The notes below the pieces were generated by a model. The model was not told the DNA's origin and made no database searches. It saw only the letters and a program-made list of their open reading frames with translations. A stretch of DNA of 64,000 nucleotides. Source: Klebsormidium nitens (Eukaryota > Plantae > Klebsormidiophyceae). A program made the translations under genes and the position numbers. Below, piece by piece: positions 58,741 to 63,992 of the stretch. Positions within the stretch are counted from its first letter, which is position 1; each line of letters opens with the position of its first letter. Location: the NCBI GenBank assembly GCA_000708835.1, contig DF237232.1, forward strand, positions 49,307 through 113,306, in the 5' to 3' direction.

Positions 58741-58994
58741 GCAACGATTTGGGTCGACCGTCGTGTTTCTTCTGCAGGATTTGAACTTTCTCTCCTCTGA
58801 ATGCCAGCGAGGCCGCTTCACTTCGATTCCTTGCTTGCGAAAAGACAGACACATGCTTGTCCGTCTCGACGCTCAACCGATCGAGTCAACAGAGTGCAAA
58901 ACGACTCGATTGATCTTCCCTCGAGGTCCGAAGCAACCTCCTAACCTGTCTTACGTTCACCAAGCCCAGTATTTACCTGCGGGTCTCTGCTTAG

Positions 58995-61545
58995 CTAAAC
59001 CAGCCTCACTGTTGCATACGCTGCTCGACCTCCGGCGTTTCCTGATGGCTGCAAAGAAGCAGAGTGGGGCCATCGTTAAATTCGACCGAATTCTCGTGAA
59101 GCGAGATATCTAGCAAGAGAAGCACGAAGCGGGACCTGAACGGCCACAGTACACGCCGGAATGGAAACTAACGGAAGTTTGCTTGAATCGGTACTCCGCT
59201 TGGCCATCCAATCAGATCCAAAGGTACTTTAAGCTTTTTAGATAACATCACGACTGAAGGGCTCGATATAATACGAATTGAAACCATCCCGCCATTGGTC
59301 ACAGTCTTGATGAAAAAGTTGTTTGTTACCCCCGGCAACCGTGGGCTGCCTTTCTGTAACGAGTCTGCCAGCTATCCACGTGGCGGCCACGCCGCTAAGC
59401 ACAAAGATCCTAGCGGAGCTGCGTAAGTGTCTGCTTCTTGTTAAGATATTGACTTTATTTCTCAGGCCGGGAGCGACTGGAGTTGTGGAGGTCATGCTCT
59501 GACGAGGGCAAAGAGCGTAAGCTATCGAAACCCCGGCACCCAAGGCATCAAGGGTCAATTCGATACCCTGCCCACCGACCCACAATTTTCGATCGAATCA
59601 CAGCAAGCTGCTCAAGGTGAAGCCAGTCGAAAAATGGAAGAAACACAAGCCCACCCGCAGAAAGCCAGAGGTAAGCATGCAGGCCATCAATCTAACCAAA
59701 AGATAACCAAGCCGTCAAGCAACAACAATCTACACAGTCAAGGCGACCCCCACCTGAGACTCCAGATCGTCCTGACCAAAATGGACGACCACCGAGTGTC
59801 CCACAATCGAGCTGGGCCCGTCTAAGCTGATGACAACGTCCTCCAGCGTGGTCTGGACCTTGCCATCCTGCAAGGCAGGCAGATGAGCAGGCGCACAACT
59901 CAGGGAAGTGTCTCTGATTAAGAATATGGCCAAGTATTGAGCCTAAATCCTTCCACCCGTCGAGTCTTGCTGATCTGATGCAGGCCTCGTTACATCCAGG
60001 TCAGATGGCACAGACGGCAACTCAGCCATTGTGCTGGCCCTACGTTGTCAGCCCGAATGTTCCCCAGATCGCCCACATGCCGCTCCTCGCTGCCAGGCGC
60101 CCCGTGGGGCTTCTTGCTGGGGTTGTAGTGCCCCCCCGTGCACAGGCCGTCATCGCATGTGACATCGCCAATCTCCTGCAGCGACATCGAGACCAGTATG
60201 AACAGAACCGCAGCAGTCCTAGCATCTGACTATTTTGCGAGCACAGGCTTCATTTCTAACAGGCACACATGGGCAGGGGTAGCAGTCCCACCACCTCTGT
60301 CTCGCGGTCAGTTTGAGCCAGCACGGAGCAGAGCGCCGAAGTTCATTGCCTAAACATGAGTTGGTTCATTTGTCAGTGCTTGCGCTGAAGTAACGAGCCT
60401 ATGAACGGTTTGTTTTAGCCAGACTTCCAATGGGCGCAGAAAGTTGACCGACTTTTCTCCCGATGTTGCTTCCGCACAGGTCATTGGACACTACCTAAGG
60501 ACGGCTGGGTCAGCGATCCCCCTTCACCTCCCTTCCCATCCCCCCTACCCCTTCCTTCCCCTCCCCCCGCTCCTCCCCCGCCCCTCCCTCTTCACCCCCC
60601 CTTCATTGCCCTGCATGGCTTCACTTTCGTTTGCTTGCCAGTATCAGGCAAAGAACACATACAGTAATGCAGACTCTTTGCCAAGGGACAAAATCCTGAG
60701 AGACAAGACGCCAAGGAGCAGAGTTCTGAGAAAGAAGCTGTACATCGCTCCAAACTAAAGCGTCTGCTCAAGCTGACTCACATGAATGTGGAATCCATGC
60801 ATACCAGGGGAGAGACCCCCAATATTGACGTCCACCTTCACTTTCCTGCCACCAAAGAAGCCCGACGACTCTGTGAATGTAACTTCACCTGTACAAGGAG
60901 CAGGAGATGCAAATTACGTTGACGGGGTCCACATTTTGGGGGCTTTAAAGCCCACTAAAAATTGTTCTTCTACAATGATAAATAGGACTCTGGAACAATA
61001 CCTGCGGAAGAAGTAAAGAACCACCTCAGAGGAGCTCAAGCAACTGCTGCGAATGACTATCCGGTCAACAACAGCGGCCACGATGCACTCCTGGCATAGA
61101 TTCTCACAACACATGCTGTGGGCGACTTCAAAAAGCACCATTCAGTGGGCCTTGTTCTAGACATGGAAGGAGACATACCAAAAGCCGTGCTTCCCTTTGT
61201 AGGAACCAATTTGGCAACTGCCACCTTTGCAGCTGCTGCCTCAGCTGGCTGAGCCAATGCTGCGCTGGCTAGGGCGAGGCCGAGGAGGAAATCTCGCCGG
61301 GGGCACTCAGGCCCACATTGGCAGCCCACTGCCCTTGCTTCTGAGAAGCTGCCCACACATTGTGCCTGGACTGCGAGCTTTCGGGTATGAATTGGCACTG
61401 GGGCAGCATGCACGGGAAGGCCCCAAAATGACTTTGGCAGGACGGCGGAGCTTGCGACAGAAGCAGCCGCTTCTGGACGAAAGACTAAAGCACCAATAGT
61501 AAGGGCAGCAGGGCCTGAAAAGGCAATTGCTACAGTGCACGCCAT
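58995..61545 (-). CDS. Cu/Zn superoxide dismutase with a predicted plastid transit peptide plus twin-arginine thylakoid transfer signal, about 257 aa
   Basis: Exons 61179-61545, 60782-60888, 60044-60175, 59754-59867 and 58995-59048 join in frame. Metal ligands are present: [29 protein letters not shown], plus the catalytic Arg in GNAGGR. The N-terminus contains [21 protein letters not shown]. Confidence 0.92.
60517..60604 (-). repeat. C-rich (G-rich on the sense strand) low-complexity tract in SOD intron 2
   Basis: Many runs of 3-7 C separated by short T/A/G linkers, e.g. CCCATCCCCCCTACCCCTTCCTTCCCCTCCCCCCGCTCCTCCCCCGCCCCTCCC. Confidence 0.8.
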
Positions 61546-61906
61546 TCTGCTGGACAAGAGGACTGGAAAGCGGAGAGCTGTACAGATTCGCACCCTAGGT
61601 GGTCCTTGAGAGTGCTTGAGAACGGATTGCAAATTTGTTAATTCTTCACGTTTGTAATTAGTGAAGAATTTCGGTTCTCTTGTGCGGACCGACAGATTCG
61701 AATTTGTTAGCGCGCAGCGCGGCCGCGCAGCGGCCGCGTGCGCGACTTCAGCAGTATAAAATGAGCAATCTCCCGCTCATTCCTTCATTCTGCCAAGTTC
61801 TAGCACGCAAGTTCGCTACGATCGTGCACTCTTTTCCTTTCTTCTTTCCCTTTCTTTTCGTTTCGAAGAACAGTGAGCTACTCTATCAGAGCCTCTCAGC
61901 CTGCGT

Positions 61907-62879
61907 ATGGCATGTCAGTTCGGCCAGATGGATCCTCTCATGGCTGAGGCCTACGCAAACGGCTTGTTCCCTGAAGGCGTCTTCGTCAACCCGCAACTAG
62001 TGCATGGACCTCGAGCTCCTCAGATGCATGGCTTCTTCCCTGGCGCTCAAGACGAAGGTCGTGCTCAAGATGAGATGCATGAAGACCAGGAAGGTGGTCA
62101 GGGTGACGAAGCAGCTTTCGATGCGCATGCAGCAAACCAACAGGCTCAAGCTGCTGCTGAAGAGGCTTTCGGCATGCAGCAACTCCAGCATCTCTTCCAG
62201 GGACTCTCTGATAACATCATCGCTCGTGTCAAGGGGGAGTTGACTCAGTCCGTCTCAGCCTCTGTGCAAGATGCAGTCTCATCCACATTGGCTGGCAAGA
62301 AGCGTCGAGCTGAAGCAATCAAGAACGACGGCATCAAGAAGCAGTTCGTTCCCCTCGAAGAAGCCTGCCTGCGCATGGAACATGTCAAGTCCTCCCTGAA
62401 GAACTTCACCGAAGGAGAAACTGAGGAGATCTCGCACGACGATGCCGTCAAGATGCAGGACCGGACTTCTTGGATGAAGGTATCTCCCTTTGCCAGAAGA
62501 GAATGACTCACCTTGAGATTGCTGAGACTGAAGGTTGGGGGGTTGCGAAGAAGATGGAGGAAAATGCGCTGTTTCTCAAGTTGCAGACGATGTCCAGAAG
62601 CAGCTCAAACGGACAAAGAAGGATTTCAAGGCCGAGGAGAAGGAGAAGGAGTCCAAGAAGAAGACCAAGCAGGGCTTCAAGCCGAAGTTCTTCCAGAAGA
62701 CCAAGAGCTTCTATCCCCGCGGGGGATTCTCTGTTGGACGTGGTGGAGGCTTCTACCAGGCTCCTGGCGGCGGCAAGCCGTGCTATTCCTGTGGCCAGCC
62801 TGGTCATATCAGTGCCTTCTGTCCTGGGAAGGGTTTCGCAGCTGTGAATGCTGGTAGAGCACGCCCTGCTCTACAGTAG
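61907..62879 (+). pseudogene. Frameshifted gag-like ORF of the retroelement
   Basis: Plausible protein continuity requires shifts near 62460 (DDAVKMQD to LDEGISLCQKRMTHLEIAETEGW) and near 62575 (EENALF to SQVADDVQKQLKR). Confidence 0.7.
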
Positions 62880-63446
62880 TCAGGACTTAGTGTTGGTCTC
62901 AGAGTTGCTAGCACTAGGTTGTTGGCTAGACAGACATTGGCATTGACGGAACATTGTACAATCCTGTATCCATTATTGAACACTTGCTTGTAACACACAT
63001 ATCTCAGCTGTCTATTTCGATATCTTCGTGCATGTCCTTGAATTGCTTGAGTTTCCCATTTTCTCTTTTGGAATTGACAAAGGTGCTACCTTTGGTTCTG
63101 CAGTCTTCTTGAGAGAGCTATGATCAAGGCTTCTGGGAGCTTCCCAGAGATTGCTGCCTTAAAAAGAGAGCTGATTGCTCTAAGAGATTTTTCTGGCAGG
63201 GATGCCATCCCAAACGCCATTGAGGAGCTTCCTCAATCATGGCTTCGTCAGCCTGCTGAGCCAGAGTTTCTGGTTTTTCCCTTGCGCTGCTTGGGTGTCC
63301 GCTCATTACAGGGAGCTTCCCTGTTTCTTCTTTGTTCGCGCAGCGAACTAATTTTGGGGGAATGATGCTTTCCCACTGGATCGAACTTCTCCATGGGAGC
63401 CTTTGTGCTTATCTGACCTCCCATTGTTTCCAGTTATCTAACATTT

Positions 63447-63992
63447 ATGTTTCGTGCTACTACAGCTGATGCTGAGTCACTGCACCTGCTCTCTGATTTC
63501 ACTGGCGCTGCCGAGTTCGAGGGTTCTCGTCGTCCCTCTGAGTCATCTTTTTCGAAGCCTACCACTCTGCCTTCGTCTTCATCTGCGCCTCCTGCTCCCC
63601 GCGAGCCCTGGCTTCGGAATCGCCTGCGTGATCAGCTCTCCTTCTGGCGCACCATCTGCACTTCAGCTTTTGTGCTCAGCATCATCTCCGTTGGCTATCA
63701 GCTGCCTTGGCTCGAGGGTCCTCCCCCTGGTCCGTCTTTCAAGGCAAACCACCCGTCTGCCTTCCAGTTTCCCGACTTCGTCTCTGATGCTGTCGCTTCC
63801 TTAGTTGTCACGGGTGCTGCTCAGGAGGTCTTCTTTAAGCCTTTCATCATCAGTCCTCTTGGTGTAGTACCAAAAGGTGTCGATAAACTTCGCCTCATTC
63901 TGGATCTTCGATGCGTCAACAGCTTTCTCAGAGTGGATAAATTCAAGTATGAATCTGAAACGGCGGGGCTAGTTTGCACGCCGTTGGACTGA
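63447..63992 (+). pseudogene. Reverse transcriptase N-terminal fragment (DIRS pol), premature stop at 63990-63992
   Basis: Ends at FKYESETAGLVCTPLD-stop, before the DLK.GY and catalytic YxDD motifs. Confidence 0.75.

Follow-up and report, generated by a model that had tools for sequence, protein, structure and literature searches.

Whether plastids hold a superoxide dismutase (SOD) in the thylakoid lumen has been asked on and off since the 1980s. Superoxide is thought to form within the thylakoid membrane and on its lumenal side, and textbook accounts assign plastid superoxide to enzymes of the stromal side, CSD2 and FeSOD at the thylakoid surface. To the best of our knowledge SOD is not among the described lumen proteins, and none has been assigned to the lumen in plants. 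The question is raised again by a Cu/Zn SOD gene in a 64,000-nucleotide stretch of the Klebsormidium nitens genome (the window; contig DF237232.1, positions 49,307 to 113,306), whose product begins with a long leader of two dissimilar parts, one resembling a chloroplast transit peptide and the other a twin-arginine export signal. Our analysis predicts, with a probability of roughly 0.6, that this precursor is imported into the plastid and then exported to the thylakoid lumen by twin-arginine translocation (Tat).

The gene runs along the minus strand of the window from its ATG at 61545 to a TAG stop codon at 58997-58995, in five exons separated by four introns that are all of the GT-AG type (Table 1). 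Its spliced coding sequence of 774 nt gives a translation of 257 amino acids identical to GAQ86348.1 (P0001 in our sequence set), a protein retrieved by searching with the exon-1 open reading frame (ORF) and labelled in the database as 'copper/zinc superoxide dismutase [Klebsormidium nitens]'. The gene is annotated on scaffold DF237232.1 of assembly GCA_000708835.1, where FMO-like and ENTH/ANTH genes adjoin it. From the match to an annotated K. nitens protein and from this position on the scaffold it follows that the gene truly belongs to the nuclear genome of a streptophyte alga, whose plastid is primary, and not to a contaminant.

Evidence at the RNA level came from Logan contigs of 4 runs from 4 studies, placed on positions 58800-62000. 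All four exon-exon joints are present in spliced contigs from these runs, and contig depth is 100-460 across exons as against about 2-28 across retained introns, a contrast from which we conclude that the contigs are RNA assemblies; exon 1 falls into the same depth class as the remaining exons. The low-depth contigs cross introns 59049-59753, 60176-60781 and 60889-61178 in all 4 runs, and indicate that a small fraction of the SOD RNA is unspliced or intron-retaining. In 3 of the runs the exon-1 contigs reach upstream to 61648, 61647 and 61612, about 100 nt before the ATG. The initial annotation of this locus, made from sequence, had named transcripts starting downstream of the twin arginine as an observation that would speak against its proposal of a lumenal enzyme; as far as these contigs show, which is presence, transcript 5' ends and levels lying beyond their reach, the RNA extends upstream of that motif. 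No ATG was found in the 215 nt upstream of 61545, and the sole Met besides Met1 is Met152, which lies inside the barrel. No leaderless enzyme is therefore translatable, and the leader is obligatory.

The exon that encodes this leader lies where it had been placed at the outset (61179-61545, with the ATG at 61545 and the exon end at 61179 on the minus strand), and the peptide quoted for it is encoded there. Its N-terminal part had been described as acid-poor, rich in Ala, Ser and Val and about 70 residues long; the composition holds, but the region extends to about 82 residues. Residues 1-82 consist of 21% Ala, 11% Val, 10% Pro and 9% Ser, and contain no Asp, three Glu and only 3 Arg and 2 Lys, for a net charge of +2, while AlphaFold2 models residues 1-84 without secondary structure at a predicted local distance difference test score (pLDDT) of 45-56. 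Both the composition and the predicted disorder are those of a chloroplast transit peptide, taken as an unstructured, acid-poor N-terminal extension rich in Ala, Ser, Thr and Pro.

Directly behind this region, residues 82-88 read P-R-R-D-F-L-L and match the RRxFL core of the Tat consensus SRRxFLK, including the Phe that two thirds of the Tat signals in E. coli have (PMC7317946). The h-region that follows (F86-A98) comprises 13-14 charge-free residues with a Kyte-Doolittle value of about 1.5-1.6, and the only helix that AlphaFold2 places outside the barrel is found here, at residues 85-95. Pro100 and then A-E-A (residues 101-103) close the leader, and beta-strand 1 is modelled at residues 107-115. 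The succession of twin arginine, hydrophobic stretch and A-x-A leading into the SOD barrel that the initial annotation had recognised is thus located at residues 83-103, and its ending exactly at the start of the folded domain is as expected of a cleaved export signal. A pattern composed of RR, a hydrophobic stretch at least 12 residues long and free of charge, and AxA at the leader end arose in 0.36% of 20,000 composition-preserving shuffles of the Klebsormidium leader and in 0.56% of shuffles of the leader of its Chlorokybus homologue described below, percentages that are rough because the pattern was picked after seeing the sequence. Just upstream of the twin arginine there is also a Cys cluster (residues 75-81), which is not conserved in the leaders of the Chlorokybus and Gloeochaete homologues. 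CCS and the N-termini of certain bacterial SODs use CxC motifs for copper binding (PMC8382915), and, although speculative, this cluster might pass copper to the barrel in the stroma ahead of Tat export.

Judged by sequence, the strongest support for lumenal targeting is the recurrence of this arrangement in other algae. Three database searches revealed only two further eukaryotic relatives of this SOD type, in Chlorokybus atmophyticus (P0006; Chlat1/5144) and in the glaucophyte Gloeochaete wittrockiana (P0267; MMETSP1089). The Chlorokybus domain is 68% identical to that of the Klebsormidium protein and is its sister (support 100/99), and the two have in common a 5-residue hairpin insert, an identical C-x4-C loop and a Tyr in place of the strand-8 Cys. 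Their leaders are unalignable and share the same overall plan: that of Chlorokybus has a Ser/Thr/Arg-rich start, less hydrophobic than the start of the Klebsormidium leader, and continues with T-RR-SALIAAAAAAVAAAP...ALAAA just before the mature domain. The Gloeochaete leader begins with M-A-F-V and carries T-RR-NTFLGIARAAIASSMLSQLMAQQEAFA ahead of the mature domain; Phe-type starts of this kind mark the plastid transit peptides of glaucophytes, Cyanophora examples being MAFVAPIVAV and MAAFVAGAQA (PMC4510345). A twin arginine, a hydrophobic stretch and an AxA-like site behind a plastid-type N-terminus are therefore found in 3/3 algal leaders that otherwise cannot be aligned, and a twin arginine at the n/h boundary of all three is hard to explain unless it has been selected. 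The Chlorokybus P0006 model itself shows two anomalies: it has 17 residues inserted ahead of R-H-x-G-D-L-G-N, and it misses the V-H...DDLxSQ segment with the last Cu ligand. Both probably stem from faulty annotation, an intron having been retained and part of an exon overlooked.

As for the passenger, Pfam Sod_Cu (PF00080) matches exon by exon (E 3e-06 for exon 2, 1.4e-10 for exon 3 and 1.5e-06 for exon 4), and the whole protein GAQ86348.1 is precomputed as PF00080. AlphaFold2 models the barrel from residue 107 with a pLDDT of about 87-98, and Foldseek returns SODs only (template modelling (TM) score up to 0.92), which fits an eight-stranded Greek-key beta-barrel. Residues H156, H158, H174, H182, H191, D194, H231 and R248 occupy invariant or nearly invariant columns in an alignment of 60 sequences. 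By this alignment the active site is intact, with all metal ligands, three His and the bridging His for Cu and His, His and Asp for Zn, and the catalytic Arg kept, and the enzyme is predicted to be catalytically competent; its mature form would have a mass of about 15.8 kDa and an isoelectric point of about 5.9.

The relatives of this enzyme are overwhelmingly bacterial. Among 5.8 billion proteins the best 120 matches comprise 117 bacterial or metagenomic sequences (46-59% identical), the query itself, the Chlorokybus protein and a two-domain Logan protein (P0041, 38%) that we left unclassified; no plant CSD is among these 120. The nearest bacterial relatives bear general secretory (Sec) or lipoprotein leaders and are for this reason considered periplasmic. 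The best solved match is the Bacteroidetes CuZnSOD of PDB entries 7B4O/7B4P (142 bits, TM 0.91-0.92), as compared with 115 bits for the spinach and tomato chloroplast enzymes, and the 'eukaryotic-like bacterial CuZnSODs' (Wright 2021, PMC8382915) have 7B4O/7B4P as their type structure. The loops specific to this group are present: compared with E-class enzymes, the electrostatic loop DDLxSQP(S/T)GNAG is shorter by six residues and loop IV is longer by one. Both E-class marks, the disulfide from the upper subloop Cys to the strand-8 Cys and the Gly at the dimer-interface position of human Gly150 (Wright 2021, PMC8382915), are absent and replaced by Tyr and Arg. The canonical intrasubunit disulfide (human Cys57-Cys146) is missing, with Tyr251 standing for the strand-8 Cys and the loop Cys at C165 and C170, which does not exclude membership among the Cu/Zn SODs because the bacterial Group 3b enzymes also lack it. 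Given the Arg at the Gly150 position, an E-class dimer is unlikely and a monomer is predicted by the criteria of Wright 2021 (PMC8382915); the enzyme is probably monomeric.

By these comparisons of sequence and predicted fold, the enzyme belongs with the periplasmic Group 3 Cu/Zn SODs of bacteria, the 'eukaryotic-like' group, of which it is an offshoot in a eukaryote; it is not CSD1/2/3-like, and no variant of plant CSD2. The lower score against the spinach and tomato enzymes, the two loop indels and the lack of plant CSDs among the best 120 matches speak, indirectly, against orthology with the plant CSDs. The representative search also returned many very long proteins (P0121-P0156) of up to about 2,165 amino acids with 4-12 tandem Cu/Zn SOD domains, which outscore every single-domain relative in that search, and a bacterial lipoprotein (P0271) has two domains of the C-x4-C type.

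With animal and fungal E-class domains as the root, and plant CSD1/2/3 left out, our trees nest the algal sequences in the bacterial radiation, apart from these E-class domains (support 96/83; in a second tree 92 by the Shimodaira-Hasegawa-like approximate likelihood ratio test, SH-aLRT). A scan of GTDB species genomes yielded 557 relatives, spread over at least 14 phyla and headed by that of a metagenome-assembled genome (MAG) of Planctomycetota at 59% identity. The algal sister is a Planctomycetota MAG in one tree and a metagenomic protein in the second, quick tree of 100 rows, and because the backbone lacks resolution no bacterial donor can be named. A search for a cyanobacterial, endosymbiotic origin gave little in its favour: only 1/80 nearest genome matches is cyanobacterial (Calothrix), and this one has a lipoprotein leader and groups with Rhodothermota. 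The idea that the Tat signal was inherited from the bacterial donor is likewise unsupported, RR-type leaders being found in 0/80 of the nearest bacterial relatives and in 12/267 of a wider bacterial set; with RR missing from the nearest kin, the signal looks like an algal acquisition. A tentative scenario, and one that we regard as rather doubtful, is that early Archaeplastida took up a bacterial-type Cu/Zn SOD a single time and gave it a transit peptide and a newly evolved RR, so that a lumenal SOD would have belonged to the antioxidant set of the ancestral primary plastid, to be kept only in glaucophytes, Chlorokybus and Klebsormidium and lost before land plants. Group 3 Cu/Zn SODs were also seen in Chlamydiota (Parachlamydiaceae and Waddliaceae) and Babeliales (L033, L061, L069, L078, L004 and L063), which are intracellular associates of protists; these are 48-54% identical to the algal enzyme and do not stand beside the algal sequences in the trees.

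The initial prediction of Tat-dependent lumen targeting thus gains in silico support from the obligatory leader, from the position of the signal module and from its recurrence in Chlorokybus and Gloeochaete. In the route that we propose, residues 1 to about 82 would act as a transit peptide for import across the envelope and would then be removed in the stroma, exposing a signal composed of P-RR-DFLL, the h-region and A-E-A. The thylakoid Tat (delta-pH) translocase would recognise the twin arginine and carry the already folded barrel across the thylakoid membrane, where the thylakoidal processing peptidase would cleave after about Ala103 and free a soluble enzyme of about 15.8 kDa that may dismutate superoxide in the lumen. 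What we infer is each of these transport steps, where the precursor is cut and where the metals go in. The lumen is topologically equivalent to the bacterial periplasm, the workplace of the enzyme's relatives.

Several points weigh against this route. At the acidic pH of the lumen superoxide dismutates spontaneously, so that the need for a lumenal SOD is arguable. Only three algal sequences of this SOD type were found in total, and a single origin of the three genes is neither rejected nor established by the approximately unbiased test (p = 0.124). The h-region of Gloeochaete contains an Arg and failed the strict RR/h/AxA pattern, and its target could also be the periplasm of the muroplast. 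Profile hidden Markov models (HMMs) of Tat signals remained below threshold on the Klebsormidium and Chlorokybus leaders, with 17.3 bits against a cut-off of 22.7 (E 0.005) for Pfam TAT_signal on Klebsormidium, 8.9 (Klebsormidium) and 15.0 (Chlorokybus) against 16.7 for TIGR01409, and a match to TIGR02811 also under its cut-off (E 0.019); these profiles are modelled on N-terminal bacterial signals and the signal here is internal, and none of them matched any of 5 bacterial control leaders, in which respect the near matches speak for a Tat signal. Residues 1-22 are fairly hydrophobic (Kyte-Doolittle about 1.5-1.8) and can be read as a signal peptide for the endoplasmic reticulum (ER). Finally, the c-region Q-P-A-E-A has no basic 'Sec-avoidance' residue, a feature that is frequent, if not obligatory, in Tat signals, and Tat and Sec signals have overlapping functions (PMC7317946), so that the protein might enter by Sec.

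On that account the protein would reach the lumen through cpSecA/SecY, crossing unfolded and receiving Cu and Zn in the lumen, on the pattern of bacterial SodC in the periplasm and of plastocyanin in the lumen itself. The Sec or lipoprotein leaders of the nearest bacterial kin, with the scarcity of RR among them and in the wider set, agree with such a route, as do the non-basic c-region and the subthreshold HMM scores. Sec signals, however, hardly ever contain paired Arg (0.02% in E. coli; PMC7317946), and in each of the three algal leaders this pair immediately precedes the h-region, though it is missing from those same bacterial kin; since the Klebsormidium motif in addition fits RRxFL down to its Phe, we consider entry by Sec unlikely. 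It is also improbable that the enzyme stays on the stromal side, either soluble or anchored to the thylakoid by an uncleaved hydrophobic segment, with the RR/h/AxA module as a non-functional remnant or an anchor. The plant plastid Cu/Zn SOD is indeed stromal or located at the stromal thylakoid face. Uncleaved Tat-type anchors do exist, as in the Rieske protein (PMC7317946), but the 13-14 residues of the h-region are few for a stable span of the membrane, a Pro precedes the AxA site, which lies immediately before beta-1, an equivalent module is kept in three otherwise unalignable leaders, and the enzyme family is periplasmic.

The two readings that take the enzyme away from the plastid fare worse. 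If residues 1-22 were an ER signal peptide, the enzyme would be secreted like animal extracellular SOD (EC-SOD), with the second hydrophobic stretch incidental; the hydrophobicity of these residues is akin to that of the later h-region, and extracellular Cu/Zn SODs are known in animals and appeared among our database matches. This we hold to be very unlikely, for the N-terminus has neither a basic n-region nor a predicted helix and abounds in Gly, Pro, Ser and Thr; the Chlorokybus leader is Ser/Thr/Arg-rich and less hydrophobic, that of Gloeochaete has the plastid-specific MAFV start, and secretion would leave an 80-residue spacer and a second signal without a role. A mitochondrial bipartite presequence, in which a matrix-targeting part and a hydrophobic sorting signal would lead to the intermembrane space, seems barely credible. 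Its basic residues, uncharged stretch of about 15-19 amino acids and cleavage would resemble sorting signals for that space such as the one of cytochrome b2, and Cu/Zn SOD is present in the intermembrane space of yeast and animals; yet residues 1-82, with their few Arg and Lys, form no Arg-rich amphipathic helix, and the glaucophyte homologue has a Phe-type plastid leader. A complex-plastid arrangement of ER signal plus transit peptide was ruled out, the plastid of K. nitens being primary.

The features of the locus are collected in Table 1.

Table 1. Features of the Cu/Zn SOD locus of K. nitens, in positions of the window.
Feature	Position	Strand	Evidence
Coding part of the Cu/Zn SOD gene	58995..61545	-	Spliced coding sequence equals P0001; annotated gene span
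5' untranslated region, minimum extent, ATG-free	61546..61648	-	Exon-1 RNA contigs
Exon 1: complete presequence and first 19 mature-domain residues; 367 nt, phase 1, donor G|GTATGT	61179..61545	-	Joint 60888|61179 in contigs of 4 runs
Chloroplast-transit-peptide-like region, residues 1-82	61300..61545	-	Composition; predicted disorder
Cys cluster C-Q-C-G-P-E-C with CxC triad, residues 75-81, just upstream of RR	61303..61323	-	Sequence
Twin-arginine-type signal, residues 83-103, predicted to target the lumen	61237..61299	-	Motif, h-region, predicted helix, AxA
Predicted mature start (Ala104 onward) including beta-strand 1	61179..61236	-	Alignment with bacterial mature N-termini and solved SODs
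Exon 2: beta-strands 2-4, Cu ligands in H-G-F-H-I-H	60782..60888	-	Pfam Sod_Cu, RNA joints
Exon 3: loop IV with unusual C-x4-C (Cys165, Cys170), bridging His, Zn ligands His/His/Asp	60044..60175	-	Pfam Sod_Cu, alignments
Exon 4: Greek-key strands, last Cu ligand (V-V-H), start of shortened electrostatic loop (DDLESQ)	59754..59867	-	Pfam Sod_Cu, RNA joints
Exon 5: P-S-G-N-A-G-G-R (catalytic Arg), Tyr for the canonical disulfide Cys, Arg for human Gly150, stop	58995..59048	-	Alignments

Head-to-head with the SOD gene, retroelement ORFs occupy 61907-63992 of the plus strand. They include a gag-like ORF with a CCHC zinc knuckle at 62535-62879 (Pfam zf-CCHC, E 1.5e-05) and an ORF at 63447-63992 with a reverse-transcriptase-like stretch that has no Pfam match; RNA contig depth is zero over 61903-62000 (98 bases, 4 runs), the part of the retroelement that was covered. 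Between the 5' end of the SOD gene and these ORFs, at 61715-61760, a GC-rich near-palindrome GCGCGCAGCGCGGCCGCGCAGCGGCCGCGTGCGCG is followed by TATAAAA, and the two may be a promoter or terminal-repeat feature of the retroelement.

A full-text search, with most subscription journals outside its coverage, brought up no paper that deals with a Cu/Zn SOD in the lumen or with the SODs of Klebsormidium, or that cites the accessions, and the description of the bacterial group by Wright 2021 (PMC8382915) makes no mention of algae, chloroplasts or Tat. A predicted lumenal Cu/Zn SOD in three early-branching algal lineages means that the question of a lumenal SOD can be tested directly in an alga that grows in culture and has a genome available. 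It would provide an example of 'conservative sorting by topology', in which a periplasmic bacterial enzyme comes to work in a periplasm-equivalent compartment, here by means of an export signal, the twin arginine, that is absent from the nearest bacterial relatives. The prediction further adds a copper enzyme to the likely metalloproteome of the lumen, and it raises the question of where Cu and Zn are inserted into an enzyme without the disulfide that the CCS chaperone pathway uses.

Set beside 7B4O and the other Group 3 SODs, the algal enzyme has the same shortened electrostatic loop (DDLxSQPxGNAG) and a loop IV of equal length, is 50-59% identical to its database relatives, shares with Group 3b the absence of the canonical intrasubunit disulfide (through a Cys to Tyr replacement in the algal enzyme), and comes from a family that is exported from the cytoplasm. 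It differs in residing in a eukaryotic nucleus with 4 spliceosomal introns and in having a transit-peptide-like leader plus an RR signal where the bacterial enzymes have a Sec or lipoprotein signal. Its C-x4-C loop Cys are also found in a few bacterial members (P0200, P0271), and its strand-8 Tyr in P0200, with Thr/Val at that place in P0271, whereas the 5-residue hairpin insert of the Klebsormidium enzyme is common only to Chlorokybus.

With CSD2 (spinach 1SRD, tomato 3PU7/3KM2) it shares the fold, the metal ligands and the catalytic Arg at about 45-47% identity, and both are nuclear-encoded and plastid-directed, the algal enzyme by prediction. CSD2, on the other hand, has the Cys57-Cys146-type disulfide, an electrostatic loop six residues longer and a loop IV one residue shorter. 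Its leader is a simple transit peptide for the stroma, and the enzyme acts there or at the thylakoid's stromal face.

Thylakoid Tat substrates with bipartite presequences include PsbP/OE23, PsbQ/OE17 and the copper enzyme polyphenol oxidase. Their leaders present the same order of transit peptide, RR, moderately hydrophobic h-region and AxA before a soluble domain, as well as acidic residues just upstream of RR, and polyphenol oxidase offers a precedent for a copper enzyme on the Tat route; here the passenger is instead a superoxide dismutase, whose Tat transport is a prediction. An SOD with predicted Tat export is likewise found in Chroococcidiopsis, whose MnSOD SodA2.1 is predicted to go to the periplasm or the thylakoid lumen and whose Cu/Zn SodC is predicted to be cytoplasmic (PMC8193680), but SodA2.1 belongs to the unrelated Fe/Mn SOD family, is prokaryotic and has a single signal. 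The Klebsormidium protein thus pairs an enzyme family with a targeting route, each of them known, in a combination that is new and, as predicted, in a new compartment.

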